Numbered from the stretch's first letter, positions 3,631 through 54,451 are shown. The stretch: 64,000 nt of DNA from Lepidodermella squamata (GCA_047495785.1 JBLDXI010000074.1:992001-1056000), one strand, 5' to 3'. The notes: generated by a model from the letters alone, not told the origin. Numbers and translations are program-made.

Positions 3631-5398
3631 CTATTCGTCGTCAGCCTCGCGACTTTTGGGCTTGTCCTTCTTGTTGCCCTTGTGGCCCTTCTTGTGGCCC
3701 TTCTTCTTGTCTTCACGAGCTACCTCTTCTTCGTAGGCAGCCTCGCGACTTTTGGGCTTGTCCTTCTTGTTGCCCTTGTGGCCCTTCTTGTGGCCCTTCT
3801 TCTTGTCTTCACGAGCTACCTCTTCTTCGTAGGCAGCCTCGCGACTTTTGGGCTTGTCCTTCTTGTTGCCCTTGTGGCCCTTCTTGTGGCCCTTCTTCTT
3901 GTCTTCACGAGCTACCTCTTCTTCGTAGGCAGCCTCGCGCACAGAAAGCTTTTGATTCGTGTTGGGCTTGTTGACACCGTGGACAGTTTTGGGCTTCTTT
4001 GGGATCGAGTTGACGCCCTTGGGAAGCTTGGCGGCATTGTGGGCAAGTAGTTTAGCCTTGTCTGCAGCACTGATAAGAGGCTTCTTGCCCGTCTTAGGCT
4101 TGCCGTCCTTCTTCTTGTCTTCACGAGCTACCTCTTCTTCGTAGGCAGCCTCGCGACTTTTGGGCTTGTCCTTCTTGTTGCCCTTGTGGCCCTTCTTGTG
4201 GCCCTTCTTCTTGTCTTCACGAGCTACCTCTTCTTCGTAGGCAGCCTCGCGACTTTTGGGCTTGTCCTTCTTGTTGCCCTTGTGGCCCTTCTTGTGGCCC
4301 TTCTTCTTGTCTTCACGAGCTACCTCTTCTTCGTAGGCAGCCTCGCGCACAGAAAGCTTTTGATTCGTGTTGGGCTTGTTGACACCGTGGACAGTTTTGG
4401 GCTTCTTTGGGATCGAGTTGACGCCCTTGGGAAGCTTGGCGGCATTGTGGGCAAGTAGTTTAGCCTTGTCTGCAGCACTGATAAGAGGCTTCTTGCCCGT
4501 CTTAGGCTTGCCGTCCTTCTTCTTGTCTTCACGAGCTACCTCTTCTTCGTAGGCAGCCTCGCGACTTTTGGGCTTGTCCTTCTTGTTGCCCTTGTGGCCC
4601 TTCTTGTGGCCCTTCTTCTTGTCTTCACGAGCTACCTCTTCTTCGTAGGCAGCCTCGCGACTTTTGGGCTTGTCCTTCTTGTTGCCCTTGTGGCCCTTCT
4701 TGTGGCCCTTCTTCTTGTCTTCACGAGCTACCTCTTCTTCGTAGGCAGCCTCGCGCACAGAAAGCTTTTGATTCGTGTTGGGCTTGTTGACACCGTGGAC
4801 AGTTTTGGGCTTCTTTGGGATCGAGTTGACGACCTTGGGAAGCTTGGCGGCATTGTGGGCAAGTAGTTTAGCCTTGTCTGCAGCACTGATAAGAGGCTTC
4901 TTGCCCGTCTTAGGCTTGCCGTCCTTCTTCTTGTCTTCACGAGCTACCTCTTCTTCGTAGGCAGCCTCGCGACTTTTGGGCTTGTCCTTCTTGTTGCCCT
5001 TGTGGCCCTTCTTGTGGCCCTTCTTTTTATCTTCGCGAGCTACCTCTTCTTCGTAGGCAGCCTCGCGAAAAGCGAGCTGGTGAGTCAACGCGGGCTTGGC
5101 GCCAATGTGGACGGTGCTGGGCTTCTTTGCGACCTTGTTGGCGCCATTGGCAATCTTGACGGCATTGTGCGCGAGCGCGTTAGCAACGCTGACCTTGCCA
5201 GCTACACCGGTAGGCTTCTTGGACTTGCTAACATCATGGATCTTGCTTGCTACACCGGAAGGCGATTTCGGCTTTTTGTCTTCTGCCGATACAGCCAACA
5301 CAGCAGCAAAAGCCTGTGAAATGAAATCGTATCATGGCAAGATATAACGCAGACGTGAAACTCACCACTACAAGAGTCAGAAAGATGATCTTGTTCAT
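3631..5398 (-). CDS. Secreted Lys/His-rich polyprotein precursor A (571 aa; exons 5398-5366, 5313-3631)
   Basis: Signal peptide MNKIIFLTLVV|AFAAVLAVSA split by a 52-nt GT-AG intron; 11 copies of spacer REAAYEEEVAR separate cationic modules; TATA-like element near 5459-5466. Confidence 0.9.
3640..5070. repeat. Coding higher-order tandem repeat: 96-bp and 216-bp units arranged in a 408-bp period
   Basis: Near-identical shadow ORFs recur at 3912, 4320 and 4728 (408-bp offsets); 8 short and 3 long modules. Confidence 0.9.
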
Positions 5399-7039
5399 GA
5401 TAGGACGAAAGTTAAAAACGAAAAGAGGATAGTGAAATTTTACTGATCAGCCTTGCGCTTTTATAGGCATTCTTAGGGAAAGTTTCGCCAACTGTTCAAA
5501 TTCGAGCTCACGTGTATAACGGGGCGCATTCACATGTTTCGGGTATAACAATGCACTTGATGAATGATAGCACTAAGGTGGAGGCGAGCTGGCAGCGGTT
5601 CAGTTGTTAAAAAGCACATGAACATCGCTAAAATATTGTAAAATATTTAGCGGCTTGTTTGCATTAGAAGCTAACGAAATAAAAAATTTGACGCTGGCTA
5701 GCAAACAAATTAAATATGTAGTAGTTTCATTTTTAATTATGAATTATCTATTGGCAGATGTTGAGAATAATGAATTAAAGAAAAAGAAGTTGAAAAAGGA
5801 AAATTGACCTCATCCGTGCGGGCGCGTATATTTCTTCTTCGAAAAGCAATCGGCATAATAATTTTGCGATGATGATGTTACTCATTTGTCATTCTGCTAT
5901 GTCAAACGGTACCCTCTGCTTTCCTCTAACTATTCCAGAGTGAGCCGAAGAAATGAGTGCCGAAAGATGAGTAAACCGCATTTATTTGTGTTTCCAAGAT
6001 CGAAGACAGGTCAACCTGAATTTCTGTGCAAAATAATGTCATTCATATGTTGATGGTACATAATCTCAATCGGAAAATGTTTAAAACATCGCCACAATTA
6101 TATTAAGTCTAACATGTCAGAACTATGTCAGATCGAGAAAGATGAAAATCATTAAAAAGCAGAGATAAAACTCGGCACTGTTCGCGATTTTTACAGTCAA
6201 CATTCAATTGGTTTATATGTATGGTGTTCTCTGAGAAGTTGCATCCTTTGAGTTATATTCATTCTTTTATTTATTCGTCTGAAGACTAGACTTGAGTGAA
6301 TGTAATGTGATTCGATTAAGCTATAGCTGTTTTTCGCCATGTGCGTGTGATGAACGGTTCCACCCCTCACTCCTATTGCTTTAGGGAAGAGTAGGCGCAG
6401 AAAAACCTAAGCGACTAGCCGTGGAACGAATAAAAATTCAGCTTATCTGCTAACAGTGGTGGTCCCCGAAGATGGTGAGAGTTGAAAATCGGAGCGAGAG
6501 CTTGAACGATTCATCACATAAATTCATCGAACAGATGGCACAACAACTTCATGGCGTATTGCTTTCAGTTTAACCGTTATATTTTATACGTAGTATTAAA
6601 ATCATGCGCATTAGTATGAAGTTGACTTTGTTCGAAAAATTGGTTAAATTGACATGTATGTAGCAACTTCAATTGTGGCTTTCGGGTTCCAGCTACCGCT
6701 TTTTATCTTCATTTCTAAGTTATAGTTGATTAGGGCTGCTGATGCAATTATTTATTTCTCGGCGTTCTTTTTTCAATTGAGCTTCGCCATTTTTATTCAT
6801 GCATTTCGCAATTTATTTTACGATGAGCACCTAGTACTGACATTAAATTACAAGCGCATACTACCAATAATTCATCAGTGCATTGTATGTATTTGTTTGC
6901 TTGAATGACAGCTGGTTTGATCTAAGTTTTCGGCTTCTTCGGGGAAGACAAAGAATGGCTATTAGCCTACTCCTACTTAATCTGCCACGGACCAAGCCGG
7001 TTCTGCAAGCTATTCCTTGAGCTTTTATGGGGCGCATCA

Positions 7040-8790
7040 CCAGCCGAATTTCCTGAACTATTCAAACCCGCGTCGATGAGCACAAGATCATTGATTCGAA
7101 GTGAAGGCCGACTGCTAGTCTTTGTGCGTGGCACGCAGTCTTGCTGTACAAGCTCAGCCAATTGCGCCTCCTGCGTAAGATCGTCAGCGTAAGATCAGTG
7201 CTTGTCGACACTCGATGTCTGGGTGGTAAATGATGGTGCCCGTTAGATGCTCAGTGGATCTGTCACCATCGGCGATCGGCTGGAGAGTGATCACTTCAGC
7301 AATTCTACACGCGTTAAGATACCGCTGCTTGGCGTCAAACGCGTCCTGCCCAGTCCTGGACCCGCCCCTCGGTTCGATATCTCTCGGGCCGATCGTAAGG
7401 GTTACCAGCGTACACTGTGGGACCTTCTCGGTGCGATCCGGGTCCCTCAGCTTGGCGAACCGCTCCTTCGCTTGACCGAGTTCCGCCGCGCCATCAACGC
7501 TGCCCTCGTCGAAGCCCGCCGCCTTCACGTTCCTCTTTGTGACCGTAGCGAGCTGAAGAAAATATCGATGACTCCTGAGATGCGTGCTCTTATTCAGCAG
7601 AAACGCGTTCTTGAGCGGGCCATTGGCAATCACGTTGAGCCAGTTGTCGCAGCCGAAATCAAGCGGCTCGATGCAGCATTTCGTGACGCTAAGCAACAGC
7701 ACGAGTTCCGCCACGATGTCGCCAACCTGCGGCAAGTTGTTGCCCTCTCTGAAGCCTGGGTGCGTCTGCGACAGCTCGACCGGTCCGATGAACCTACCCG
7801 TTCCACTCTCTTTCATCGGCAATGTCTTTTATAAGTGGGGTGGTGTGCCTCTACAGACTCACCTTCGTCTTCTCTACAACATGTGCCTCGGCAGCCAATA
7901 CACCCTGCCGGATTGGAAGGAGGCAGTTGCCGTTGCCGTGCCCAAGTCGGGCAAGCCGCGTGCCGCCGTGTCGTCGCAGCGTCCCATATCGCTGTTGCCG
8001 TGCTGTTGACATTCCAGCTCGTATCGCCCACCGAGTGCATCAGGCCCGCGTGGCCAAACGCAATATGATAGTTGACTCGATGTGAAGGCTGCATACGATT
8101 CAGTTTGGCACTCTGGCTTGGTCCATAAGCTTGGCCAACTGCCCCTGCGCGCAATCTCATTGGGTGGCTCGCGGCTCGCGGATTACTTACGCGATCGGAA
8201 GCTCCAAGCTCGTGTGGCCGGTTTCCTCTGCCGGCAGGTCGTGTTACAGTGCGGTGTTCCGCAAGGGTCCCCGCTTTCTCCGCTCCTCTACATCATCTAC
8301 ACCAGCGACCTCCTCCGCTCCCCGAGTGCGCCTGGGACCTCCCTGGACGCTTATGCCGACGACCTCACCCTCGCCAGCAAGGGCGCTACCTTTGCCGAAG
8401 CTCAGACGCTGGCCCAGACCGAGGTTGATCGAATTGCCGCCAGGGCCTGCCTTAGGCGCCAGCAATTTAATGCATCTAAAAGCGAAGTCATCGCTTTCTC
8501 TCGCCAGCCCCCAGTCCTTCGAGTCGAACTATGCGGCGCCGCCGTTCCACAGGTGACAGCGTTGCGCATACTCGGGCTCATTTTCGATGAAAAGCTCACT
8601 TGAAAGCCTCACATAGACCACGTCCTCCAACGGTGCGGGCGTAATTTGTCCTGGTTTCACACGGTCTTGCATCGTCCGGGCCTGTCTCTGAGATGGCGCC
8701 GCGCTACTTACCTTTCACTCGTCCGCTCCATTGCGACCTTCCGGGCTGTTGCTTTCTCCTCCGCCGCCAAGACGCAGCTTCGCCGTCTGG
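7040..8790 (+). mobile_element. Degenerate non-LTR retrotransposon (LINE) fragment: end of APE endonuclease plus reverse transcriptase
   Basis: ESDH (APE C-terminus), QRPISLL, KAAYDSVWH, GVPQGSPLSPLLY, YADD and LRILGLIFD motifs spread over several frames, with stops and frameshifts. Confidence 0.9.
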
Positions 8791-8809
8791 ATGTACTACG
8801 CCTCAAACG

Positions 8810-8945
8810 CCTCAACGGGGAGAAATTATGTATATAGGCCGCGTTGACATGACACCAGTTACGGTGATAACAAGCCTAAAAGCGTGTTTCGGCCTGGGAA
8901 AGCAAAGAATACGCTGAAAGGTCTTACTAGGTGCGTATGAATCTG
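8810..8945 (+). pseudogene. DM9 gene exon fragment
   Basis: GEIMYIGRVDMTPVTVITSLKACF matches GEFMYIGRVALPTNDVIPGTVIPSLNACF at 1105-1195; frameshifted; abuts the LINE. Confidence 0.75.
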
Positions 8946-10271: not shown

Positions 10272-10950
10272 TTAACGGCCTTCAACCTTCGGCTCGGCCT
10301 TGCTGTTCAAGCGGAAGGTGTTGGGCTTCTTCTGGCCATTCTTGTTGTGCTGGCTGAGATTGTTGCCCTTCTTTCCGTCCTTGTGGCCGCTCTTCTTAGA
10401 ACCATGGGGCTTCTTCTTATCTTCACGAGCTACCTCTTCTTCGTAGGCAGCCTCACGTAAAGCATACTTTACAGTCGGTGCGGGCTTGCTGCCAATGTGT
10501 ACGGTGTTGGGCTTCTTCTGGCCGTTCTTGTTGTGCTGGGTAAGATTGTTGCCCTTCTTTCCGCCCTTTTTGGAACTTTTCTCCTTATTCTTCTTATCTT
10601 CACGAGCTACCTCTTCTTCGTAGGCAGCCTCACGTTTACCGATCTCAACCTTCGGCTCGGCCTTGCTGTTCAAGCGGAAGGTGTTAGGCTTCTTCTGGCC
10701 GTTCTTGATAAGATTGCCTGCCAGCACGGCGCCATGGCCAAGCTTGCTGCCCTTGTGGTTGCTCCTTTGGCCGTTTATGTTAGCACCATGGGCCTTGACT
10801 GCTGAACCGCTAGGCTTCGGCGTTTTTTTCTCCTCTGCCGATACAGCCAACACAGCAGCGAAAGCCTTTAAAATGAAAACATATCATTGCAAGATATCCA
10901 GGAGGCGTGAAACCTACCGCCACAAGAGTGAGAAGGATGATCCTGTTCAT
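10272..10950 (-). CDS. Secreted cationic polyprotein precursor B (208 aa; exons 10950-10918, 10865-10272)
   Basis: Same signal exon and intron position as A; two REAAYEEEVAR spacers; ends in KVEGR-stop. Confidence 0.88.
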
Positions 10951-13227: not shown

Positions 13228-14466
13228 ATGAAATTTGGCTTCTTTTTGTTATTGCTTCTTGCTGCATCGGCGGCTGAAAATGTGGGCCAAGATTTGACTG
13301 CGTTAGAAGAGCATCAAGCCAACGAAGATGTCACGGTAACGGAGCAACCTGCCGGCGAGGAAGATGCCCAAGCTGACGAAGAACTGGCCGATGCCACCAT
13401 GTCAGAAAATTCTCTAGCCGCGGAAGAAGACGCTGAAGAAGGCGACGAGTCTGATGTCGATGAGGGCTATTCAGACGGAGAAGATTCGACCGACGAAGAA
13501 GCAGATTACGACTCGTACTTCGACGAAGTATTTGAAGACAGTGAAGATGGCTTCATTCCAGACTACGATTCAACCGAGGCTGAAAGGTCAGACACGGATT
13601 TGAAGCGAGAAATTGAAAATCAGCTGAATCAAGACCTCGGCGAGAATCGCCACGCCGTAACAAGGATTATTCAACGACGGCTCGCTGAGCGACGCGGTAA
13701 CCTGAAAAATCCTGCGTCTGACGATGTGCGGATTACATGGGAGCGCGAGAACGCGTTCAACGGTGAGATGTTCATGGTTCGCAACTCTGAAAGAGCTGGC
13801 CTGAGGCACATTTACGAAGGCAAACGATCTAATTGGGCGCAGAAAGGCGTCAATACTCCTGAGGAAATGCTGGCGGTGATGCAGAAAATCTGTACAAGTG
13901 CCAACAAGCTTATCGATCTATTCGGAAACGATAACAACGCCTTCGTTACATGGTAAGGTTTTCTCAATTATCTCTGAATCTTCGTGTATATTTTTATTCT
14001 TTATAGGTACTTCGTACCCACTGGTAGCGAGTATGTGATCAACGACAAGGGGAAGAATAAGTACGCGTTCAAGGTTGTCAGTTCGATCAACAGCGATTTG
14101 GAGGCGAAGGAAGGTATCGTTGCGCGATCGGTCATTACAGCGTTCTGGCAAGAACACAGACGGTTCAAGCGTGACGTAGCCGAAAATCCACCGTGCGACG
14201 ACGGAGGGGCGAGAAAAGCTGTATGCAAGTTACCAACCCGGCCTAAAACAACTCGAAGACCTGGCAAAACTACACGCAGTCCGGGGAAAACGACGCGAAG
14301 ATCTGGCAAAACGACTCGTAGGCCGAATCCTGGCGGGAAAACGACGCGGAAGCCGGTACCGGGCAAGAAAACAAATCGTTCCAGCCGAGCCACTACTCGA
14401 AAGCCGAAGAAGGGAATATTGAATATTCAGCAGTATTCAATCTGCAACGAAGAATATAATTTTTGA
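13228..14466 (+). CDS. Secreted protein: signal, acidic propeptide, putative toxin-like nuclease domain, RRFKR site, cationic KTTR-repeat tail (exons 13228-13952, 14007-14466)
   Basis: Signal MKFGFFLLLLLAASAA; a 54-nt GT-AG intron joins TW|YFVP in frame; motifs AGLRHIY...WAQKGV and VITAF. Confidence 0.85.
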
Positions 14467-15261
14467 TCTGCTATTTGTCCTTGGTCCATCGAAACGTTTT
14501 TACACTCTTGTGCACATTAATTCGGCAGCTTTTCGTTTCCGATATTACTGCTATTGAAAAATGCGGATGAAAAATGGCGTCATTTTACACGCCTGACCTC
14601 GCCGCCGGCAGTTTTGCATTGAATAATATCGGCCAATTTTCGACGCAGCCCCAGACCGGCAATGTTAGCGATATTAAATGCATGCGAGAAAAATATTTCA
14701 GTGTAATGAAATAATAAATAAATAACACAACAAAATGCACAGCGCCACGTTTTAGTCCTATTAACTTTCATGTTTTCGAGTTCGATTTTTCATCATATAT
14801 CGCTATCGCCACCATCGAAATTAGGATCGGCGCGAAAAAAATACCGGCCATGTCTGCCATCGCATTGACCTATCCCGGGGCGTTTTGTTTACTTGATATT
14901 ATAATTGTTATTAGGATGACTGAGTGTGAATATTTGCGAACATTATTTTTCCCACCAGAGCTTGCATCAAATACTCCGCCACATACAAGAAGTTTTTTCC
15001 TTAGCAGACCTTATTGTACCACTCATTTTCCATGACTTGGTGCGAATTATCCTATATGCAGCAGTAACAATATTTGAGGCGTTGCTTTTTCGGTTAACGC
15101 TCTTCTTTTCTCGAGTTTAAATCTCGAATCTCTGTGGACGAATAAGTATTAGAATAATATTAGCATAGCAAGTGATCAGCATAAGATACTAAATTCTTTA
15201 AAAAAACACCGAACATTTACATTTTACATTATACAATTTTTGCTCTTTTTTTAGCTCAACG

Positions 15262-16014: not shown

Positions 16015-16590
16015 TTAGTCAGATAATTCACTTTCCACATCAGCTTCAGCGAGAGCAGCAGCGGTTTCGGGGCTGAACTTGACTAGAATTCCCTCATCTG
16101 TTTTCTTGATTTCGAACTCTGGCTTGCGACAAATGTTTCCACCGCCTACTTTCCTCGGGCAGCACACGAGCCTATTTGCCGAACAGTCACTGTGCTTCTC
16201 ACAGCCCCTAGAAAATGGCTTCTTCGTCGTAATCTGACCCGGAGTTGTGAAGATGGACGTACCGTCTTCGTCTGACAACTCTTCACCTTCGAATTCTTCG
16301 CCTTCAATATCAGCGTTGATGTCCTCATCAGCATTTGGAGTTGGCTGTGTGGTACTGGTTCTAGACGTCGGTCGAGAAGATTGACTTGACAAACCGCAAA
16401 CCTTTCCGCCAAATTGGATCTCACTGCTTTGCTTAGCCTGAGCCAATATCGCCGGTTTGATCATTCTGTTCCACAGCAACCTTTCAAAGACCAGATTGCC
16501 GTTGGCGTCCAGCTCAGCCTTGCCACCAGAGAGCCAAGCCGCCTCGCCTAAAGCGAGACCGATCAGTGAGAAGAAGAAGTAAACCTGCAT
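16015..16590 (-). CDS. Cys-rich secreted family member 1
   Basis: Signal MQVYFFFSLIGLALG; QFGGKVC; CEKHSDCSANRLVCC...CRKP. Confidence 0.85.
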   Translation of the reverse strand: MQVYFFFSLIGLALGEAAWLSGGKAELDANGNLVFERLLWNRMIKPAILAQAKQSSEIQFGGKVCGLSSQSSRPTSRTSTTQPTPNADEDINADIEGEEFEGEELSDEDGTSIFTTPGQITTKKPFSRGCEKHSDCSANRLVCCPRKVGGGNICRKPEFEIKKTDEGILVKFSPETAAALAEADVESELSD

Positions 16591-16877: not shown

Positions 16878-17357
16878 ATGAAGTTGATAGCACTTTTGCT
16901 AGTTATATGCTCAGTTGCTGGTAAAACCTCGGGCTGTTGGAACCTGTTTAAAGAAGGCGGCGAGGAGGGCGAGCACCAAGAAATTATGTCGATCGCAGCC
17001 GAAGAACTTATGGTCGATCTCGAGCGCTTGATGGCTGAGAAGTCAGTTGATAACAAGGAAAATTTCAACATGGTGAGCGGGCCGTTGTGTGAGAAAGGCA
17101 GCAAGTATGTGACTCCGCCGGAGCTGGATATCGAAGCTGATCTTGACGAGGATTCAGCTTCAGCAATTGATGAAGTTGAGGCCGCAACTCAAGGTCCACT
17201 AACTGACGTTACGATTTGCAAGAGTCATCTAGACTGTGCGCAGGAGGGCGGTGTATGCTGCAAGGCATTGAAGGGAAGTCACTTCGAATGCCGCCGGCCT
17301 CGGCTCGAGTTCAAAGCCGCCGATGAAGGTCTGCACATTAGATTGGCTCGGCAGTGA
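16878..17357 (+). CDS. Cys-rich secreted family member 2
   Basis: Signal peptide; NMVSGPLC; CKSHLDCAQEGGVCC...CRRP. Confidence 0.87.
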   Translation: MKLIALLLVICSVAGKTSGCWNLFKEGGEEGEHQEIMSIAAEELMVDLERLMAEKSVDNKENFNMVSGPLCEKGSKYVTPPELDIEADLDEDSASAIDEVEAATQGPLTDVTICKSHLDCAQEGGVCCKALKGSHFECRRPRLEFKAADEGLHIRLARQ

Positions 17358-18612
17358 AAACCGGATCCTACAAAAATTGTCTCTGAACAAGTTGAGAATC
17401 GCGATAAAGGACCGACTTTTTGTCGAATAAAAAATAAATGAGAAATGCGTCCAACCGCTTTTATGACATGTTCAACTCAAAAATACAGGTCATCATAAAC
17501 ATAACGGACATAACTGGTAGTTAACAAATGCCAATTTGCACTTTGCTACCTTTTCAATACAACTTGTTCGAGTAATTTTTCCTGGGGAATAAATGGAAGA
17601 CGAAATCGGAGCATACAAGCGGCTTCTCAACTTCGGGAGCTAAAATCAATTTATTTTGACACCCAATTCATAGAACATAATTCATAATTTATTCTATGCA
17701 TGGGCGTGTGGATGCTCATAAAATAATGCAATTTAAATATTAATTTGTCCCTGAGAGTAAAAGCTACAACTTGGTAGAAACATACTTGCGAAAAAATTAT
17801 TTATAACGATTTTTTTCGGATAAGTGCGTTTACAAATAAGACTTCAACGTACATTTCGAACAAAGCGCAACATCACACGCAATAGCTCGGTAAAGACAAG
17901 CTATAATTAAAATGCTAACAAGATAAGCACGCACGGCTGACATGTCTTTTTTCGGTGTTGAACATTCAATTATGTTCAACTATGTGATGTTTACAAGAAG
18001 ATAGACGTCATTTTGTTGTCTTTTTTCGGCATTACATTTTTTGAATATTAGCCCATCAGGGGTGCACCAACACCCCTGTTATTTTACTCCAGCTTCTTAA
18101 ATATTATTTCGTTGATAAAGTTGTCTCTCTTCGCCTGCAAGAATCGGCATCTTTCTGGATAAATGTCAGTCGGTTTTGTAATTCTCACCCTGCTTGTGAC
18201 GATCTCCGCCGGATGCCAACCCTCGCCCACATTGACAGAACCGTCAGGCACAATGTCATCAACCTTGTCCACTGGAACCACCTGCGATGATAAAACTTCC
18301 ATGTCGTTGCAATCGTGCATAGTTCAGTACGAAATATTATTTAACTGAATAGATAATTCATTATGTCCAATTCATGACAACTTTATTTTCATTATTATAA
18401 ATGCCCTTAATCGATTACTGAAATAAATGCTTAGCTCTCTCCTGAAATTGCATTGTCATGATGGGTAATGAATAGAACAAAGCTTAAAAATAGTCTTCAA
18501 CCGACTTATCCAACGTATGCTTTTATTTCTTATATCGAAATAGCAAAAAAATTGAGAAGAAAGTGTAACAGGTGGGTTCCTACAACCATCCTCACTTTTC
18601 GTTAATAGCAAA

Positions 18613-36133: not shown

Positions 36134-36254
36134 ACTCATATAATTCTAACAGTAAATGTGTTCTTTTGTAATTTTCGTTTGCCGGATTTCATTGTTATCA
36201 GAAAAATAAAATTCAGATATTGCTAAGTACATGGCGGATTGTTTTTAATAAAAA

Positions 36255-36551
36255 ATCTGCGGCGATAACAGCAAGCTGACGTCTCTGTTGACTGGCGAAG
36301 ATGCTGACGGGGATGGAGAAGGCGACGCTGAAGTTGATGGTGAGGACTCACGCAGGAAGAGGCCGAATCTCGGGCTGGAGACCTGCAAGCGTCACGGCGA
36401 CTGCGCCTCGAGGAAGCAAGCCTGCTGCAAGGCTAAGCGTGGCAGCAAGTACCAATGCCGCCGCCCAGCCTATGTCGTTGAACAGACTGAAGACGGCGCT
36501 GTTGTTCGCTTTGAATGCTTGTGCAAAGGATTTCGCCCCTGCTGGGGCTGA
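36255..36551 (+). pseudogene. 5'-truncated Cys-rich family member 5
   Basis: Begins abruptly at ICGDNSKLTSLLTGED; closely similar to the 46509, 51722 and 53918 genes; no signal exon seen. Confidence 0.75.
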
Positions 36552-40500: not shown

Positions 40501-41915
40501 GGAGCTTGGCAATCGGCTGGGGATTCGGATCCACCCGAGGCCGATGTTACAGCAGTAACGTAGCTGTTGCCATGGGCAAAAGCATGTTTCGCAAAGTTGT
40601 CCTGCAAATCCATTACAACAACCCGCGACTAAAATCAAATCATCGGGATTCATCCGGCTTTCGGCTGTACTTCGCGCCGGCTTCGCTTGTTAAGCGTCCT
40701 GATAGCGCTTCTCGATGTGGGGTTTCGGCCAGGACGAAATTCACCTGCCACCTGGGATGCCCGGAGTCAGCATTCACTCATGGGCGTTTCTCAATAGCTC
40801 ACGATGCAGCATTGAAAGGCTGAAACCGCATTCAAAATATTACATAAGTTACATAAATTTCCACATGCATTTGATGGGATATCACGCCAGACTGGCGATT
40901 CGCAAGGCTAAGACTAAAGCGATGATAACCTTAATTGATGAGGACGTTACTTACGACAGGCCGAAAGCGGTCGAATATTTTGATAAAAACCAATCTCCCG
41001 TGGTAGAACCTGGGGATGATCTTTTCTTAGGTCTGCTCAAATGATTTTTGGTTAACTCAAGGCTCATCTGTAATTTTCAGAGTGTACCTACCGGACGACA
41101 GAATTTAAATCTCATACCTTTATGGGGCCGCATACGAGTGATGACATGTGCATCGCTTTCATCGAGGTCTATCCAAGACCTCAGGAGCTAAACTACTTTC
41201 CCTTGTACAACTATGCCGACGTGAGTCAAAAATACGTGCGAAACTTTGTTTCCTTTTTCCATGATGACACCGCGAAGAATCAAAATTTACCAAAGAAATC
41301 CTAAAAAATTGTTTTCGGTTACAGGAATTTTCTATACCCGCTTAGATTTCACTCGGTGGATCATGATTTTAATTTCCCGTGAATTTTATTGCCGGTTTTC
41401 TTGAATTATGTTTTCTGTTTCCAATAGGTTAGTCCCATTTGCATGGATAACGATGCCTACTCGTGCAATTTGACTTCATTCGCACCAGCTATTGAGCGAG
41501 TCATTGATAATGCAACTGCGTTTGCTTCATTCAACGCCAGTTGTTTCTCGCAGCAAATCAAATCTTCGTGCCGCCCGAATGCGAAAGGTTCGTGATAAAT
41601 TTCACTTTGAGGGTAATGAATTGTATTTCTCCTCATGGCAGTGAGTTGGACAAGCTTGGTTTGAAAAACCATCCATGTATGCTACAACCAGTCTTTCGAT
41701 ACTATGCTCAAAAAATGACGTCGCATCAATCAGAGGCTTACAAGCTGCATTGGGGTGTAGCCCCATGCTTGAAAATCGAACCCACGTCTTCGTATTCGAT
41801 AATTGATTCCAGGTATGTCAAGCCGAAGAGCCGAAAGACTGCTAAAACGAACCAGGGCGTTGCCGTTGGAATCAGTGCATCGCTTATCATCACTTTGATA
41901 TTCATTTCGATATGA
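37570..41915 (+). pseudogene. Temptin-domain / DBH-like copper monooxygenase gene interrupted by an LTR element, with two apparent 1-nt frameshifts
   Basis: YPEYRDSIPNG..V.NPC...GVGH...DSDGDGRSNGEELGD (temptin); THHIL, QIHYNN, FHMH and DDMC copper ligands; frame breaks near 40713 and 41576. Confidence 0.8.
37697..39805 (+). mobile_element. Non-autonomous LTR retroelement
   Basis: LTR 39584-39805 (TGTGGCGA...TCGCCACA); 37697-37904 matches its last 208 bp; PBS TGGTGTCAGAAGTG at 37906 (tRNA-Leu type); polypurine tract at about 39569-39583; no gag/pol motifs seen. Confidence 0.9.
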
Positions 41916-42259: not shown

Positions 42260-43528
42260 TTAGAGTGATCGCGGGAATCCGTTCGCTTTCATTTTCCGAT
42301 CCCAAGTGAACCAGCCAAAATGCTTCTCAAATGTTTTGCCCATCGAGTTGTCATCGTGACGCCGGTCGTGGAAGGCGAACCAGAACGCTGGCTTGCCTCT
42401 AGTTGCCCCGCCCGTGACCCAGCGCGCCACGGCTTCGTAGTACTGCTTCGCCGTAGCCAGACTAGCCTGAACCCCGCCGTTATGACCCGCGCCGCCTGCA
42501 GTCGGAAAACCGGTTTCGGTGAGCACGATCTTCGACTTATCATAGCGCTGCATCATCTGATTCCACTGGTCTTGGAGGGGCGCGGCTGGGTGTTGGTGGT
42601 TGTAGCGTCCAAAATACGGGTAGATGTTGACTCCGATGATGTCACAGGCAGCAGCTAGACGCTTCGTCTCGCCAGAAATTCTGTTGTCCACCCACTCCGT
42701 TATGCGCTGAACAGTTCCAACTGGAACTCTTCGACCTGAAACAACTCGAAGACATCAAGAAAATGAGCGAAAATTGAAAAGTCTAAACTTCTATCATCGT
42801 GTAATTTCTGCCATTTTTTAAGACATTCAAGCCATACCTGTCCCGCGTTTTACAGCATCTCGAATGCCGTTGATTCGGTTGATTATGTCGTTTGCCGTGA
42901 ACGGTCCATTTGGTTTCAGATTTTCGTTACCGACTAGAATCGCTACAACTGTATTCGGGTACCTCTTAACAGCATCAACAGCCGCCTGAACTTGAGCACC
43001 GTACCAGTTCTCATTCGTCATGAAAACGCCAAGGTATAACTTGACCCCGTATTTCGCCGCAGCTTGGGCAACAGGTACGCCGTGAAAGGCCGAGTAAAAC
43101 GTTCTAACGTACTTGACGTAGCGCGACATCTGCCGAAAATCTTCGTCAATCGCACCGGCTAGATTGCCGAGTTTCCCACCATTCAAAGGATACTCCTTGT
43201 TATGCATTGCGTCGTAATTAGCGCCGAGCAGTTGTACCACTCCTCTGCGTTCGACATTATCGATAATTCCACAGATCGCCTCCGAGTCATCCGATGTTTC
43301 AATCTCCGGAGCCTCGCCTGATTTGAGAGTACAAATGCCATCCGACCATTTGAAATGGGTGCAATCTTCGGTGCTTTCACATTCGTCTGCGCATTCTTCG
43401 CTTGGCAGTTCAGCACTTATTAGATCTTGCTCATCGTCGGAGAACGTGCAGCCTTCGTCGGTTTTTACTTCAATATCCGCAGCAAAAACTGCCAGAAAAA
43501 AGATGGCGATACACACGATTAGTCTCAT
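42260..43528 (-). CDS. Secreted PAN/apple-domain + GH17-like beta-1,3-glucanase (exons 43528-42838, 42735-42260)
   Basis: Signal peptide; EECADECESTEDCTHFKWSDGICTLK (PAN); YVRTFY, LVGNEN (acid/base), VPVGTVQR, GVNIYPYF, LTETGFPT (nucleophile), EKHFG. Confidence 0.88.
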
Positions 43529-45052: not shown

Positions 45053-45586
45053 ATGAACAGGATCATCCTTCTCACTCTTGTAGTGGTGAGTTTATCACGC
45101 CTCCATAATATCTTGTCACGATATGTTTTCATTATACAGGCGTTCGCTGCTGTGTTAGCTGTATCGGCAGAGGACAAGAAAACTCCGAAGCCTAGCGGTT
45201 CAGTAGTCAAGGCCCATGGTGCTAACATAAGTGGCCAAAAGAGCAACAACAAGGGCAGCAAGCTTGGCCATGGCGCCGTGCTGGCAGCCAATATTATCAA
45301 TAACAGCAAGAAGAAGCCGAACACCGTCCACATTGGCAGCAAGCCCGCGCCGACTGTGAAGTTCGCTCTACGCGAGGCTGCCTACGAAGAAGAGGCAGCT
45401 CGCGAAGATAAGAAGAAGGACAAAAAGAAGGACAAAAAGGCCGGAAAGAAGGGCGACCATCTCAGCCAGCACAACAAGAAGCCCAACACCATCCACGTTG
45501 GCAGCAAGCCCGCGCCGACTGTAAAGATGGCTCTTCGTGAGTCTGACTCCGAAGAAGCGGCAGCTCGTAGAATAGGCTTAGTATGA
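45053..45586 (+). CDS. Secreted cationic polyprotein precursor C (exons 45053-45085, 45140-45586)
   Basis: Same signal and intron as A and B; spacers REAAYEEEAAR and RESDSEEAAAR. Confidence 0.88.
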   Translation: MNRIILLTLVVVSLSRLHNILSRYVFIIQAFAAVLAVSAEDKKTPKPSGSVVKAHGANISGQKSNNKGSKLGHGAVLAANIINNSKKKPNTVHIGSKPAPTVKFALREAAYEEEAAREDKKKDKKKDKKAGKKGDHLSQHNKKPNTIHVGSKPAPTVKMALRESDSEEAAARRIGLV

Positions 45587-46508: not shown

Positions 46509-47036
46509 ATGGATGCTAGATTACTTTGCCTTCTCGTGCTATGCCTTGGTGTCGTGAATTGCCGGCCTAACAAACGAGCTGTTGATGCTGAAGAAGATGC
46601 CGACGAACGCCAAGCCGCCGCCGATGCTGAAAATGCCCTTTTCGACCAGCTGTGGGACTTCGTCGCCGCGCCATCGATGGAGGGTGAAGCTAAGGAGAAC
46701 GACGGCGATTTCAACGACATGGTCGGTGGCAAGGTCTGCGGCGACAACAGCAAGCTGACGTCTCTGTTGACTGGCGAAGATGCTGAAGGTGATGGTGAAG
46801 GCGACGCTGAGGGCGATGCTGATGCCGATGGGGAAGACTCGCGCAAGAAGAGGCCGACTACCAAGCCGAGGCCGAAGTCTTGCAAGCGTCACGGCGACTG
46901 CGCATCCAGGAAGCAAGCTTGCTGCAAGGTGAAGCGCGGCAACAAGTACCAATGCCGCCGGCCTGCCTACGACGTCGAACAGACCGACGACGGCGCTGTT
47001 GTTCGCAAGTTCTGCTTAGGCATCTGCTGGGGCTGA
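46509..47036 (+). CDS. Cys-rich secreted family member 6
   Basis: Signal peptide; KR-acidic-ER pro-segment; LWDF; MVGGKVC; CKRHGDCASRKQACC...CRRP; C-terminal FCLGICW. Confidence 0.9.
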   Translation: MDARLLCLLVLCLGVVNCRPNKRAVDAEEDADERQAAADAENALFDQLWDFVAAPSMEGEAKENDGDFNDMVGGKVCGDNSKLTSLLTGEDAEGDGEGDAEGDADADGEDSRKKRPTTKPRPKSCKRHGDCASRKQACCKVKRGNKYQCRRPAYDVEQTDDGAVVRKFCLGICWG

Positions 47037-48185: not shown

Positions 48186-50462
48186 TCAGATAGGTGCAGT
48201 TTGGACGAGCTGTTTTCTAATCGGAAACAGCAAAGCCATGGAAACAAGGAGGGACAGTATGATAGCTATGAAACTTATTGAAGACTGCTGATTGATGGGA
48301 TCACTGCTCAGGAGTAACACGATTAGCAGCCCAGCTGGCAGCAGAGTCGCAGTGATGATTGCTGAAAAACAATTAGCCAGATATTCGGCCCGATGTTCTG
48401 CAAAACTGCGCATTTGCTTCAATTTATAGGCCAAGAGAATACTCAACAAGAGTAGAATCATTTGAATAGCGCCGAAAGCAGCTAACAGAGCAAAGGAAAC
48501 AAAACTCAAAGAGCATTTCAAGATCCGAGTTTCTACGATTGTGTCAGAGATTTCGTTGTAAGTTGGTTGCGTAGCTAGAAAATTCCCACATTCGGGCTGA
48601 GATGTCACTCCCCAAGCAATTAGAAGAATCAGTGAAGGAATTGTGATTCCTAAATTCGTTGCCATAACTCTCTGGTCAAAATTAGGTGGTATTTGACGTC
48701 GAATGATGGATGGTACAGCAATATTTGGACTTGAGAAGCGAGTAGACGATGACTTCCTCATTTTGTCTTTTCTTCCTCTTTTGACATGTTGTAGCTGTTT
48801 CTCAAACAAGCTCGAATTCCAAATGAAAAAACGAGCCGTTGTGCCGCCGCAAATTATTGCCAAGGAAATTCCAAGCAGGAGCCAACTTATGATTGTACTT
48901 ATACGTGACGAAGCGAGAGCGAAGACCATTGCTGAGATGTTCAGCGTTAGACACCCTGCCAACATGAGGAGTTTCGACTTGAAATTATTGAACTTACTAG
49001 GCCCATTAATAAGAATGCGTGCTACGCAGTAGATGAGCGCAAATACCATTGGGGAAGCTAAAATCCATAGTGGTATAGAAACCCACAGGGGAATAATGAA
49101 GAGCCGCCTCAGAACAAGCGGCTGATCGCTTGGAGGCAACCCCATGATCCATTCCATTTCGGCACCTTGTTGGATGCCATATTCCTCTGCATCCCACTCG
49201 GAACTGTAATTGTTCTTCAGCTGTATGAAGTTAGCTACCTGCGTTCCGTTTACAGGCGTCCATTGAGTTGTGACCCGAAAATCGCCCGAGATTCCACCTG
49301 ATTTAGAATAGCGTGATCGGCCAACACGAAGCCCCAAGTAGTCCTTAGTCAACACCGCTTCTTTTGCGATACGAGCCACCATCTCTGGCATATCGTGATA
49401 ATTTCTAAGCGACATGTTTCGATCAGCTCTCAGACGCCGGTCCGTCTCTTCCAGAGCTATAGCGATGCTTGATAAGGTGTCATGAAGTAGGTAGAACGTG
49501 AAGTACTCTCCTGGCTGTATGGAAGTTGACGTTGACAAAAACGAATCGAATTGTTCGACAGTATCGCCAAGATCGCTGATCATGCCGTAGTACCTGGGTG
49601 ATGCTGAATTTCCGAAATAAAACGTCTGCCTTGCTTGCTGCATCAAAATTGCTACTGAGCATCCGGCTGGCGGTTCGAGCGAAAAAGAAAGCGAGAAGGT
49701 CAAAAAGACGTAGCGAGGCCCAAACATTCCTGCATTGTATGCCTCGCAAAGAAACCGCGTAAAAAGCAGCGGGATAGTCGTTGATACCAGAACTATGCGG
49801 ACTTTGTTCAACTTGAGATTTGTTACAAACTCTGACGTACTATCGCCCATGATGTCAAAGAATAGAACGCTCATTCCAGATGCAATGGCTCGATCGTTAA
49901 GAAATAAGGATATTGTAAATTCGACGTTGACAGAGGTTGCGGCAATGCCAATTTGCTTCCAGCGCCCGACTTTTTCTACAAAAGCTAGCATTGCCATAGC
50001 TGTGGTTTTCGCACTCGTAAGACTCAGAAACAAATTCGGGTATCGAGGGTTGTTGTAGAGGCTTGGAGCAACGCAAAGTGGAGAGATTGCAACAGCGTCC
50101 AATCGATGTAAAATTGGGCCTATGGCGTTGCAGCCGACAGAATAGATTGGACCAGCCATTATCGGTGACTTTAGGCCTGCGTTCTCACTGTGGAATTCGA
50201 CCAACCGTTGTGCGGCCTGCAGGCCAGCAAGGTCGTCGCGAGTGTCGAATTCGATTGAATAATCGCGTAAAATATCATTGCGTTGGTTTATTCTGTCGGC
50301 TACATATTGACATGTCTTCATCCATGCGCCTAGCAAACGTGGGTCATTCCCTTTTATTTGCGTGAATACCAACACCTTCAATTTTGTAGAGTTTTCACCG
50401 TGGGATAATCCCACCAGGAGCAATGATGAGAACACGAAGATGAGTTGCTGGCAGAATGCCAT
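48186..50462 (-). CDS. Intronless class C GPCR (Venus flytrap + 7TM, GABA-B-receptor-like, divergent)
   Basis: Signal MAFCQQLIFVFSSLLLVGLSHG; DRINQRNDILRDY, GPIYS, RYPNLF, CEAYNAGMFGPRYVF; seven hydrophobic segments; no Cys-rich domain. Confidence 0.85.
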   Translation of the reverse strand: MAFCQQLIFVFSSLLLVGLSHGENSTKLKVLVFTQIKGNDPRLLGAWMKTCQYVADRINQRNDILRDYSIEFDTRDDLAGLQAAQRLVEFHSENAGLKSPIMAGPIYSVGCNAIGPILHRLDAVAISPLCVAPSLYNNPRYPNLFLSLTSAKTTAMAMLAFVEKVGRWKQIGIAATSVNVEFTISLFLNDRAIASGMSVLFFDIMGDSTSEFVTNLKLNKVRIVLVSTTIPLLFTRFLCEAYNAGMFGPRYVFLTFSLSFSLEPPAGCSVAILMQQARQTFYFGNSASPRYYGMISDLGDTVEQFDSFLSTSTSIQPGEYFTFYLLHDTLSSIAIALEETDRRLRADRNMSLRNYHDMPEMVARIAKEAVLTKDYLGLRVGRSRYSKSGGISGDFRVTTQWTPVNGTQVANFIQLKNNYSSEWDAEEYGIQQGAEMEWIMGLPPSDQPLVLRRLFIIPLWVSIPLWILASPMVFALIYCVARILINGPSKFNNFKSKLLMLAGCLTLNISAMVFALASSRISTIISWLLLGISLAIICGGTTARFFIWNSSLFEKQLQHVKRGRKDKMRKSSSTRFSSPNIAVPSIIRRQIPPNFDQRVMATNLGITIPSLILLIAWGVTSQPECGNFLATQPTYNEISDTIVETRILKCSLSFVSFALLAAFGAIQMILLLLSILLAYKLKQMRSFAEHRAEYLANCFSAIITATLLPAGLLIVLLLSSDPINQQSSISFIAIILSLLVSMALLFPIRKQLVQTAPI

Positions 50463-51721
50463 TTTTCTAATTTGGGTGCTCGACAACATGCGAAATAACA
50501 TACTTTGATTTTGAAATTAACAGGATGTGACTTTGACTCGTTTCACAAGGGATAGAGGTCTGCCACGACCACGCATTCTTCAAGTTTGCTTCATTAGGGA
50601 AAAATATGCGGAAAGCCAAAAGGAATGTCCCGTACCAAGCTAATATATTGCGCATGTTTCACGATTTGCCTGAGCAACAGCACTGTCACGTCAGATATAT
50701 TACGAAATAGGCTCTAAGAACTGCGAGATGACATACTATTTTTTAATTTGCCAAAGAGCAGAACGTGACTTTGACTAGTTTTATAATTTGTCATTGTAAT
50801 TATTAACTATTTTCGGCATGGGTGTCGTCTTACCTTTACTATCTCTCTCTCTCTCTCTTTCTCCCTCTTTTAAGTGCAAAGAGCTAGAAGTAAGTATCAC
50901 TGTTGCTGCGAAATTTGCGCATGGTATAACATGCACCGCAAGTTGCCATTGGTCAATAGGGCAAAACCTGCTGGTGTTGTGTTTAGGAGCAGATATTTTT
51001 TAACCACTGTCGTAACAGGAATATTACTTTTTTCAATTCGTCGTTAACACGGTAACATCGCTTACCCTGGCCAAGTTCTATGTTTCAGCCCAAATGACTT
51101 CTTGAGCAAATAAAGACTTCTCAATTTTCAAATTATCGTAATTGAGTGCTTTAATTTCAGACGTCCGAAATTAGAGCCCCCTCCATCCCTCGCTGTCCGA
51201 TATTGTAGCATCCATGTTCGCTTGAGACGAAAAGTCCAACGGAGATTACTCAAAAAGTGAATCCTTCAATTTTTAGGCGCAATGTTTGACGGTGAATCAA
51301 GATCACTATTTTAATTGTCAATCATAAAAACGAATAAGCCAGCCGCCAACTCCTAAATTTTTCGGTTTTATGTTACCTTTTATTAGGGGTCCACTATACC
51401 TAGACCATCATTTTCAAAACAAATTGATTTTTTTTATTTCATCATTTAACCGCCATCAATAACAGAAAGCAACTGACTCCATGGCGCACTATGCTCGAAC
51501 CACCTTGCCGCGTGCCGCCAAGCCAGTCACAATCCCGTGGATTGTTTGAAGAAGATCGCGCGCCAAAATTCAACACGTGTGACTGCTTGAAATATGGCCA
51601 TGTGTTATCATTCATTTTCTCAGCTATAAAACCTGCGATTTCGATACGTTTCATTCACCATTCATTTTTCATACATTAAACACCAACAAACATAATATTT
51701 TATACACTTAATCGTGCCACC

Positions 51722-52249
51722 ATGGACTCAAGACTGCTGTGCCTTCTCGTGCTCTGCCTTGGTGCCGTAACCTGCTGGGCAATCAAGCGTGCCGTTGACG
51801 CCGAAGAAGAGGCCGGCGAACGCGCCGTCGATTCCGACGCTGCGCTGTTCGACCAGCTGTGGGACTTCGTCGCCGCGCCATCGATGGAGGGTGAAGCTAA
51901 GGAGAACGACGGCGATTTCAATGAAATGGTCGGTGGCAAGGTCTGCGGTGACAAAAGCAAGCTGACGTCTCTGTTGACTGGCGAAGATGCTGAAGGTGAT
52001 GGTGAAGGCGATGCTGACGGCGATGCTGATGCTGATGCCGATGGCGAGCGTGCTCGCAGGAGGACCACCACCCCGAGGCCATCGAAAGGCAAGACCTGCA
52101 AGCGTCACGGCGACTGCGCCTCGAGGAAGCAAGCTTGCTGCAAGGTGAAGCGTAGCAACAGGTACCAGTGCCGTACGCCAGCCTACGACGTCGAACAGAC
52201 TGAAGACGGCGCTGTTGTTCGCAAGTTCTGCCTTGGCGTCTGCTGGTAG
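51722..52249 (+). CDS. Cys-rich secreted family member 7
   Basis: Close paralog of the 46509 gene with the same Cys framework. Confidence 0.9.
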   Translation: MDSRLLCLLVLCLGAVTCWAIKRAVDAEEEAGERAVDSDAALFDQLWDFVAAPSMEGEAKENDGDFNEMVGGKVCGDKSKLTSLLTGEDAEGDGEGDADGDADADADGERARRRTTTPRPSKGKTCKRHGDCASRKQACCKVKRSNRYQCRTPAYDVEQTEDGAVVRKFCLGVCW

Positions 52250-53917
52250 TTTTACTTATGATGTGTTGTTACTTTTGCACAAGTTTCGATATCAATAAAC
52301 AGTTCATCGATTTGTAAACCTTGTTTTTTGTTCACGAACCAAACAGTTCCCGTAAATGCGTCGTAGTCACGAGACTTAGCAACCTATAAATATGCATGTA
52401 TTACAAATTTTTGGAAATTCTCATAACCATTTTTTATAACAACTACTACCTAGCAGTCATTTTCAAACGAAATCTCGCCAGAGACAGCAATATTAGCCAT
52501 CCGAAGTTAAATCAATGAGACTTGGGAAGAATTAGCGGTTTCCGCTTGAAAATTTCGAAAGTTTTTGCTTGTGTCTCGAATTTTTTCCTCGCTACTAAAG
52601 AATCTCAGATGAAGTTTAATTCCTTACAAGGGTTCAACTTCCAATGTCCCGCGATGTCGAATATGAGATTATATTCTGATTCCTCGCGGTCTTAGCTCTT
52701 AGCTACATGATGTAATCTTTCGGAAATTTCCCAGAAAAATGAGTGTTATCAATCAAAATTGTGGGTTTAATTCTATAATTTGGGCATAAAAGAACCATCT
52801 CAGGATCTGCAATTGCTTACAAATGCCTCTTATACTTGCCTTCATGCCATTTATTTTCGCAAAAAATTTCACACCGGTGTGTCTCCAGGCAGAAAAAGTG
52901 GAAAACCCGACGACGACAAACAAATTAACCGAAGACTTCTAAACCAGGCTTATTTTTCCATTTTTCTACAAAGTCGGACCGAGGGTAACTACTTTATATA
53001 TCCATTCCGGCAGTCTATGTGCCATATTTAGCAAAACTATGCTATAATCTTGTTTTTTACGCGTGAAAAAAAAGAAAAACAATCCAAAATCAAGAAAATT
53101 CGAAAGTCCCCGAGCGATGGGATTTAAAATTGAAGCTTGTTTGCTAATGTTCATGGGCTAAAAAAGAAAGCGTAAAAAATGAGGGGTAAAAACGTACATT
53201 TTCAGGATTTTCTCAAATTTGATTTTTCAGGAAAATCGATGAAAAACTGAAAGGTGGCGTGCGTATTTTTATGACTTATGAAATTTTTCTTCACAAAATA
53301 ACAGCATTTCATTTTGTTCTAGTTTTTATCCAAATAAACCCACCAATTGGATGTGAAAAAATCCGTTCTATATACGTGGAAAATGTTTAGCTTACCGATA
53401 TTGGCGAAAATTGATTTTTCCTTCATTTACGGTTATCCCTCGTTCTTTTTTCAAATCTCGCGCTAAGCTAAGAATCTTGAGCCTATATATAGAAAGTTCA
53501 CAGTTCAAATCAAATAAATATGGAAAAATTTTAAAATCTTGATTCTCTTCAAATTCGTTATATTTTTCGTGCCTGAAAACCGGAAAATGGCCGAGCCAGA
53601 TCAGTTTGATGATATAGCATGGCTTCTTCCATGAACATTTTATGAGCTAGCGAATGAACTAAACTATGAAAACACGGCTCACACCTGTGGCTATTTCCGG
53701 GATGACCCAATAAAAAGCAGGCTGCTTCAAGCCGATGCGCAACAATGAAAGCGCGACCTGGTCGTGTGTCAAGACGCAGCACGTGTCACCCTACAGGCAA
53801 GCTCGTGGCGCCTAGATTTCCGCTTTAAAAACTTGCGATTTTGCGAGGTCTCATTCAGCATTCACTTTTAAGACATCTAACCACTACAAACATAATTTTA
53901 TACTAAATCTCAACAAC

Positions 53918-54451
53918 ATGGACTCAAGACTGCTGTGCCTTCTCGTGCTCTGCCTCGGTGCCGTAACCTGCTGGGCGGTCAAGCGTGCCGTTGACGCCGA
54001 AGAAGAGGCCGGTGAACGCGCTGTCGAAGCCGATGCCGACGCTGTGCTTTACGATAAGCTGTGGGACTTCGTCGCTGCTCCGGCGATCGAGAACCAGGCG
54101 AAGGACGAGGGCGACGGCGACTTCCAAGACATGGTCGGCGGCAAGATTTGCGGCGACAACAGCAAGCTGACTTCTCTGTTGACTGGCGAGGACGCTGAGG
54201 GCGATGGTGAAGGCGACGCTGAAGCTGATGTTGAAGCCGATGGCGAGCGGAAGGTGAAGAGGACCACCACCCCGAGGCCGTCGAAGAGCAAGACTTGCAA
54301 GCGTCACGGCGACTGCGCCTCGAGGAAGCAAGCCTGCTGCAAGGTGAAGCGTAGTAACCGGTACAAGTGTCGCCGGCCGGCTTTCAAGGTCGAGCAGACT
54401 GACGATGGCGCTGTCATCCGCGGATTCTGCTTCCCGCTTTGCTGGGATTGA
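53918..54451 (+). CDS. Cys-rich secreted family member 8
   Basis: Close paralog; MVGGKIC; C-terminal FCFPLCW. Confidence 0.9.
   Translation: MDSRLLCLLVLCLGAVTCWAVKRAVDAEEEAGERAVEADADAVLYDKLWDFVAAPAIENQAKDEGDGDFQDMVGGKICGDNSKLTSLLTGEDAEGDGEGDAEADVEADGERKVKRTTTPRPSKSKTCKRHGDCASRKQACCKVKRSNRYKCRRPAFKVEQTDDGAVIRGFCFPLCWD

Follow-up and report, generated by a model that had tools for sequence, protein, structure and literature searches.

Two tandemly duplicated orphan families of secretory-pathway genes in a probable chromosomal island of Lepidodermella squamata

The window analysed here is a stretch of 64,000 nucleotides (nt) from Lepidodermella squamata, positions 992001-1056000 of contig JBLDXI010000074.1 (C74) in an assembly of 121 Mb and 151 contigs (GCA_047495785.1); positions given below without a contig name are counted from its first letter. 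Between 3631 and 54451 it holds a dense cluster of predicted secretory-pathway genes. An earlier reading, made from the sequence alone (the sequence-only reading), took this cluster for a venom or defensive-secretion locus whose unrelated effectors share one maturation code, an acidic propeptide ending in Glu-x-Arg (E-x-R). The explanation that we favour, with some reserve, is that the window is part of a ~270-kb chromosomal island of lineage-restricted secretory-pathway genes, in which one duplicated orphan family (P) encodes polycationic peptide precursors and another (B) modular proteins, the products serving defence or surface chemistry. The island has mostly been built by tandem duplication of these two families, and both it and they are real, conserved and, at five adjacent genes followed in cDNA, expressed. 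Their likely role, antimicrobial or polyanion-binding in kind, is in defence by secretion or in surface chemistry, rather than as venom.

About 17 genes with signal-peptide-like N-termini, assigned by eye, lie at 3.6-54.5 kb and belong to at least nine families (Table 1). Such starts are seen in P1-P3, gene 13228, gene 15262, B1-B7, the two astacins, the PAN-GH17 gene and the class C G-protein-coupled receptor (GPCR), and probably also in the 35077 gene and the Temptin/Cu-monooxygenase gene. Families P and B together supply 10-11 of the cluster genes, namely three Lys-rich peptide precursors and an orphan first exon for P, and seven acidic-helix/Cys-domain proteins and one fragment for B. Even with each family counted once, the density of secretory genes exceeds chance. 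Between the orphan families lie genes for astacin-EGF-CUB-kringle(-C-lectin) proteins, a PAN-GH17 protein, a candidate RNase and a DBH/PHM-like monooxygenase, and DM9 and AIG1-RING genes flank the island. Genome-wide, family B occupies 16 loci, 15 of them on C74 at 874-1141 kb and one on contig C13; P-type loci are found at C74 956-959 kb, 33-35 kb upstream of the window, in addition to those inside it. The sequence-only reading had counted about 17 signal-peptide genes from at least six families. Its total agrees with our inventory, but its make-up does not: open reading frames (ORFs) with kringle and kringle/C-lectin domains are astacin exons, one signal exon has no partner, one family B entry is half a gene, and an intact multi-exon DM9 gene lies at 603-2728, outside the interval. 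Across the window, GC content is ~0.38-0.48 and composition even, genes are compact with most introns at 48-54 nt, and domain architectures are of animal type (astacin-EGF-CUB-kringle-C-lectin, class C GPCR, AIG1-RING, DM9). Chitin_bind_4 and Col_cuticle_N, from arthropod and nematode cuticle proteins, were absent, but their controls gave no signal either, and mir-10 scored below its cut-off. Neither the let-7 model nor mature let-7 with up to two mismatches was found, a weak argument for an animal outside the arthropods.

The P genes share one layout, with an 11-codon first exon, a 52-54-nt intron (GTGAGT donor, pyrimidine-rich acceptor) and one large exon. P1 starts with a signal peptide of 21 amino acids (aa), followed by 12 Lys-rich units (one of 72, eight of 21 and three of 61 aa) with 11 R-EAAYEEEVA-R linkers between them. 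Its 141 Lys and 23 Arg are kept strictly apart, every Arg being a linker edge or the start of the acidic C-terminal tail, and the predicted signal-peptidase product starts with EDKK, like each unit after a linker. The units of P2 and P3 differ from those of P1; the linker is kept, with one change from Val to Ala. All 14 linkers in the three precursors read R-EAAYEEE(V/A)A-R, 11 aa with four Glu. The units carry a net charge of +7 to +12, and their C-termini are conserved as well (KKPNTVHIGSKPAPTVK-aromatic-AL). Amphipathic stretches in the 61- and 72-aa units have a hydrophobic moment of ~0.5, for which melittin and magainin served as no more than a rough yardstick. Two P2 units have Gly before a basic residue (Gly-Lys-Arg and a terminal Gly-Arg), a possible amidation signal, and P3 ends in an acidic tail after Arg. 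No second exon matching the P-type signal exon at 21379-21411 was found downstream of it, and we therefore regard this exon as a remnant. Upstream of the window, two single-peptide P genes at C74:956.5-959 kb (L011:1004-1222 and L011:3227-3451) each comprise a signal exon and one cationic peptide, with Arg and an acidic tail at the end (REVDSEEASARR..., REAAYEEEIAR...); they resemble a simple starting form, from which iteration would have produced the polyproteins.

This arrangement suggests how the precursors may mature. Once the signal peptide has been removed, cuts would most likely fall after the single Arg on both sides of the invariant acidic nine-residue spacer; with the exposed Arg trimmed, each precursor would give between 1 and 12 Lys-rich peptides. 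The architecture is the same as that of the complex precursors of spider venom, without homology. In spiders, linkers start and end with Arg, are anionic, 8-13 residues long and family-specific, and carry both an iPQM (at least one Glu at linker positions 2-4) and a processing quadruplet motif (PQM; Glu at one or more of the three positions preceding the last Arg); cleavage occurs after Arg, and the exposed Arg is later removed (PMC7889660, PMC6832493). The P linkers satisfy both definitions, with Glu adjoining the first Arg and Glu three residues before the last, and their length falls within the spider range. They share with the linkers of cupiennin and latarcin precursors the anionic character, the Arg at both ends, the Glu next to each Arg and a sequence specific to the precursor family; a ~21-aa signal peptide, several cationic linear peptides per chain, units of which some end in Gly, and a terminal linker-like acidic tail are further points in common. 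The differences are equally clear. P precursors lack an anionic propeptide, the first unit (EDKK...) following directly on the predicted signal cleavage; their units are far richer in Lys, one type being devoid of hydrophobic residues; one invariant linker is used, compared with dozens in spiders; and the animal is apparently no arthropod. There is no sequence similarity either. A word-indexed search with P2 found no protein relative of the family among 5.8 billion sequences, so that common descent is not supported, and the linker string was absent from the searched literature; the likeness is thus one of design and not of descent. Apidaecin-type precursors yield Pro-rich peptides through dibasic sites and dipeptidyl trimming, unlike the single-Arg sites and Lys-rich peptides of P. 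These insect pre-pro-polyproteins (PMC11549390) resemble P in carrying tandem antimicrobial-type peptides in one secreted precursor.

Family B proteins consist, in order, of a signal peptide, an acidic stretch, a near-invariant Leu-Trp helix, GG-x-x-C, an acidic linker and a Cys domain of the form C-x2-H-x-D-C-x6-CC-x9-C-x2-P. Six Cys are invariant, five in the domain and one upstream, which makes a disulfide between the two segments likely. The paralogues are only 26-45% identical, yet Glu-Arg upstream of the Leu-Trp helix is kept. The N-terminal regions of eight lineages contain 19 Arg, and nine of these come directly after Glu (expectation 2.26; 0 of 5000 shuffles), whereas Asp, as common as Glu there, precedes Arg once. 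One subfamily has (D/E)-R in a single alignment column ~18 residues ahead of the helix; in other subfamilies Glu-Arg stands directly against it, in B3 for example just ahead of the hydrophobic stretch. Arg is also common at the end of the second acidic linker, in many cases as part of RKKR, RARRR, RKVKR or RERR, sites of the classical furin type. Purifying selection acts on the paralogues in every region (ratio of nonsynonymous to silent divergence, dN/dS, 0.11-0.25). The Glu-Arg may be a monobasic cleavage site; the N- and C-terminal parts would stay disulfide-linked after the cut, giving a two-chain product from which the propeptide is not discarded.

Family B had no Pfam match and, in a profile search, no PDB sequence match at E up to 10; a word-indexed protein search with B5 gave no match. 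AlphaFold modelled B5 with a confidence (pLDDT) of 53 and the Cys domain alone with 74, and a Foldseek search of PDB with the domain model returned no match at E <= 0.001. The spacing C-x4-D-C-x6-CC-x9-C-x2-P presumably recalls the cores of small disulfide-rich secreted domains, namely WAP and colipase/Dickkopf/prokineticin. The B domain differs from these in having five Cys in the domain and one upstream, and in lacking a database match, and in view of the Pfam, PDB and Foldseek results we do not claim membership in WAP, colipase or ICK. A profile of the Cys domain searched against 1.84 billion representatives gave two matches, of which one is a true relative (P0014, from a metagenomic eukaryote contig). 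It is encoded on a 10.6-kb metagenome contig (L010:8724-9506), where its neighbours include further secreted ORFs, acidic or rich in Thr; in the protein itself, EAR lies 13 residues ahead of a Trp-rich helix. Just past the window end, a B gene at C74:1058 kb (L001:316-939) is near-identical to the copy at C13:4364 kb (L002:275-880; dN 0.03, dS 0.29), and both are extended by a Cys-rich tail with abundant Gly and Lys. Basic Pro/Thr/Lys/Arg-rich repeats of the PKTT(K/R)RP type are common to the unrelated genes 13228 (13984-14466) and B4 (32017-32283) and weaker in B5-B7; they adjoin Cys-containing parts, before or after.

The motifs quoted in the sequence-only reading are all present where it placed them: EEVAR in P1 and P2, TEAER, ESSER, DADER and EAGER, the junctions DEAAR-G and DDQR-G of the astacins, and DNVER. 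Their frequency was compared with composition in 20 protein models (15 window genes and five family B genes from outside the window), by scoring each Arg after the signal peptide for Glu at -1 to -3, as in the published PQM definition, and shuffling residues within 20-residue blocks. In none of the 20 did Arg with such a Glu exceed the shuffles (P 0.09-0.96), and on this result the proposal of one E-x-R code across unrelated families fails the refutation test that the sequence-only reading itself had set. Non-secreted control ORFs of the window had a PQM rate of 15% at 3-7% Glu, and the cluster proteins 24-42% at 6-16% Glu; the raw excess tracks Glu content. In the astacin-1 pro-region, seven of 12 Arg fit the motif, which therefore does not single out the DEAAR-G junction, and the paralogous junction of astacin-2, DDQR-G, has no Glu. 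The first Arg of gene 13228 was bound to follow acidic residues, because the 112 residues before it contain neither Lys nor Arg. In the GH17 protein, DNVER is followed by a second Arg (ERR) and lies in the linker between the PAN domain and the barrel; nothing suggests that the PAN domain is a propeptide. The motif carries no information for gene 13228, GH17 or the astacins, where the likeness to spider PQMs is a product of acidic composition. Two patterns stand apart as non-random, the linkers of P and the Glu-Arg dipeptide of the N-terminal regions of B, and these form the defensible core of the earlier idea. Classical furin or dibasic sites occur in B3, B5-B7, 13228 and 35077. More generally, motifs of the E-x-R or PQM type in acidic regions cannot be read as cleavage sites without a composition control.

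Transcription was followed in three runs, X1-X3, which are undescribed libraries whose read contigs can neither rank expression nor indicate tissue. Run X1 is complementary DNA (cDNA): in one contig, 13951 is spliced to 14006, with a 54-nt GT..AG intron removed, loose ends carry a cDNA adapter that we take to be the SMART cDNA oligo, and the intergenic segments 14768-15161 and 17526-17919 are uncovered. All five adjacent genes at 13.2-19.1 kb (13228, 15262, B1, B2 and B3) are represented in it, and run X3 holds two of the five. Run X2 covers the whole of 13.2-19.1 kb at ~85x and is DNA. The cluster genes are unequally represented in run X1. Half-depth alternative contigs in run X2, at 13237-13340 and 18007-18113, show clustered differences and one 1-nt insertion; they represent both haplotypes of a diploid that is heterozygous within or close to 13228 and B3.

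The two astacin genes encode zymogens of family M12A by Pfam match, zinc motif and Met-turn. In astacin-1, the motif HELGHALGL-HEQ is intact and followed by an SVMQY Met-turn (Pfam Astacin, E 1.4e-21); in astacin-2 the motif reads HQVGH (30169-30198, minus strand), with the catalytic Glu replaced by Gln and the third His and the Met-turn kept, so that astacin-2 is probably an inactive pseudo-astacin with CUB, kringle and C-lectin domains. The mature part starts ~8 residues before a Trp...IRY motif and follows a single Arg, and activation after a single Arg is common in astacins. Unlike the usual zymogens, these have acidic pro-regions of ~150 aa and a C-terminal kringle, and astacin-2 adds a C-lectin domain and HQxxH. 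The kringle ORF (22656-23153) continues the CUB domain of astacin-1, and the kringle/C-lectin ORFs (26589-27858) that of astacin-2; each set opens with the last part of this domain, which makes them astacin 3' exons. At the position after the Met-turn where a GQR/K motif sets the preference of astacins for an acidic residue following the cut (P1'; PMC3186203), astacin-1 has GQH and astacin-2 GQR.

Gene 13228 encodes a signal peptide, an acidic segment of ~112 residues that lacks Lys and Arg and closes with TEAER, a candidate RNase domain, RRFKR and a basic Pro/Thr-rich tail. For residues 125-241 (13600-13951), language-model features placed bacterial RNase clusters of the PBECR1 barnase/EndoU/colicin-E5 type nearest (score 0.91), which makes this part a candidate BECR-type RNase domain. 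Pfam scans of 13228, 15262 and 35077 gave no match, and the half gene at 36252-36548 is either a B fragment or the 3' exon of the 35077 gene. An enzyme gene like those of the DBH/PHM family is suggested within the cluster by a Temptin_C domain (E 5.7e-25), after which come part of the N-domain of copper type II ascorbate-dependent monooxygenases and HMHLMG. One GH17 exon matched Pfam below the cut-off (22.9 against 28.2 bits); homologues named GH17 were found at 1e-62 to 1e-45 and include two that also have PAN, and the closest named relatives are a rotifer and oomycetes. Outside these families, retroelement reverse-transcriptase ORFs followed by a short DM9-like fragment (8645-8914) occupy 7184-8914, and a second copy of DM9 may have been disrupted there by the insertion. 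Past the cluster, at 59963-63928, two AIG1/GIMAP-type GTPase ORFs, each beside a RING-finger ORF, stand head to head (Pfam).

Table 1. Genes and gene parts at positions 3631-54451 of the window.
Feature	Position	Strand	Remarks
P1 polyprotein, 571 aa	3631-5398	-	exon 1 5366-5398, intron 5314-5365, exon 2 3631-5313
P2 precursor, 208 aa	10272-10950	-	intron 10866-10917; three cationic units, two linkers
Gene 13228, 394 aa	13228-14466	+	intron 13952-14005, confirmed by spliced RNA contigs in two runs
Gene 15262, small secreted protein, 131 aa	15262-15657	+	no acidic pro-segment; transcribed
B1	16015-16590	-	FER before Leu-Trp helix; transcribed
B2	16878-17357	+	transcribed (runs X1 and X3)
B3	18613-19089	-	ESSER, then hydrophobic helix; RERR before Cys domain; transcribed
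Orphan P-type signal-peptide exon	21379-21411	-	GTGAGT donor
Astacin-1	22656-25479	-	signal peptide, ~150-aa pro-region, DEAAR-G junction, HELGH..HEQ, EGF, CUB, kringle
Astacin-2	26589-31230	-	signal peptide, acidic pro-region, DDQR-G junction, HQVGH, EGF, CUB, kringle, C-type lectin
B4	32017-33257	-	two exons, predicted intron 32463-32884; long acidic, then basic Pro/Thr/Lys-rich linker
His-rich ORFs (35077 gene)	35077-36133	+	KRR, RGRR and RRRR sites
C-terminal half of a B gene	36252-36548	+	no signal peptide or helix region
Temptin_C and copper type II ascorbate-dependent monooxygenase-like gene	39858-41304	+	Pfam
PAN/apple and GH17 beta-1,3-glucanase-like gene	42260-43528	-	predicted intron ~42736-42837
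P3 precursor, 159 aa	45053-45586	+	intron 45086-45139; two units, one REAAYEEEAAR linker
B5	46509-47036	+	DADER; RKKR before Cys domain
Class C GPCR (ANF-receptor and 7TM)	48186-50501	-	membrane receptor, no secreted effector
B6	51722-52249	+	EAGER; RARRR
B7	53918-54451	+	EAGER; RKVKR

Several observations weigh against the explanation that we favour. Signal peptides were assigned by eye, and of the words sampled from 42.2-47.1 kb just 15% occur in run X1. Hydrophobic residues are absent from the 21-aa P unit, which sets it apart from typical lytic antimicrobial peptides. Paralogues agree in the nucleotides of the P linker, and its invariance may reflect recent duplication or gene conversion; at a silent divergence (dS) of 0.21 only ~1-2 silent linker changes are expected, too few for us to accept the invariance as proof of selection. 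As the B paralogues share ancestry, the Glu-Arg enrichment rests on ~8 lineages and not on 19 independent sites. The position of Glu-Arg shifts among subfamilies and sits in a helix predicted with low confidence, where the dipeptide could be structural.

Two readings of the cluster as a whole stand beside ours, and we regard both as unlikely. One is that of a venom or defensive-secretion locus in which all families share the acidic-propeptide/E-x-R code, a single Arg-specific protease and one gland cell type. The motifs at all quoted sites, the non-random P linkers and B Glu-Arg, the joint presence of neighbouring genes in one cDNA library, and the candidate toxin-type RNase, astacins and lectin domains speak for it. 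The motif, however, is as frequent as local composition predicts in 20 of 20 proteins; seven of 12 Arg fit it in the astacin-1 pro-region, DDQR in astacin-2 departs from it, and the ERR of GH17 falls in a domain linker. Furin or dibasic sites occur in B3, B5-B7, 13228 and 35077, runs X1 and X3 hold different subsets of genes, no 8-mer in the upstream 300 nt is common to more than three of seven families (equal to the null from random segments), and selection on the B paralogues is purifying and not diversifying. The other, to which we give similarly little credence, denies any functional link: fast-evolving orphan genes were duplicated in tandem in a permissive region, and motif likenesses, those of P and B included, are compositional or inherited. 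The block shuffles, the identical linker DNA, a dN/dS of 0.94 between P2 and P3, and the turnover visible in an orphan exon and a gene fragment agree with this. The perfect segregation of Lys and Arg across three P1 unit types does not, nor do the enrichment of Glu-Arg rather than Asp-Arg in B with Asp as common as Glu, the purifying selection on B and the gathering of secretory-pathway genes from at least nine unrelated families.

Narrower proposals concern the processing and the nature of the P products. That one of the cluster's own astacins cuts the P linkers is suggested by both proposed junctions, which read R-E, by the preference of many astacins for an acidic P1' (PMC3186203), and by the location of two astacin genes between P2 and P3. 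Astacin-1, which is catalytically intact, has GQH at the specificity motif, which weakens its candidacy as an R-E processing enzyme; astacin-2 has GQR but has lost its catalytic Glu, and acidic residues do not follow the family B sites. We consider the idea very improbable. Hardly better are the prospects of P and 35077 as neuropeptide-like signalling precursors, whose processing would take place in secretory granules alongside the neighbouring DBH/PHM-type monooxygenase. Basic residues on either side of repeated units, the Gly-Lys-Arg and terminal Gly-Arg of P2, the multiple dibasic sites of 35077 and the Cu monooxygenase-like gene would fit such a role. The units, though, are 21-72 aa long, charged +7 to +12 and variable between paralogues, unlike short conserved neuropeptides; only two of them end in Gly, and the PHM type of the monooxygenase is putative.

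Our own explanation, a duplicated island of orphan-family genes for defence or surface chemistry, could be carried further, to a non-arthropod animal that independently evolved spider-venom-style manufacture, with Arg-bounded acidic linkers and Glu-Arg pro-sites, and a ~270-kb island of precursors, two orphan effector families and enzymes serving one secretory cell type. This extension appears doubtful. If the P linkers are cut as proposed, the iPQM/PQM polyprotein design, described to date from the venom glands of spiders, would have been reinvented by convergence, and would yield new, very Lys-rich peptides, candidates for an antimicrobial action or the binding of polyanions. In family B we have an orphan family that is transcribed and well conserved and whose small Cys domain is new, and the island provides a compact case for asking whether the products of secretory cells cluster in the genome.

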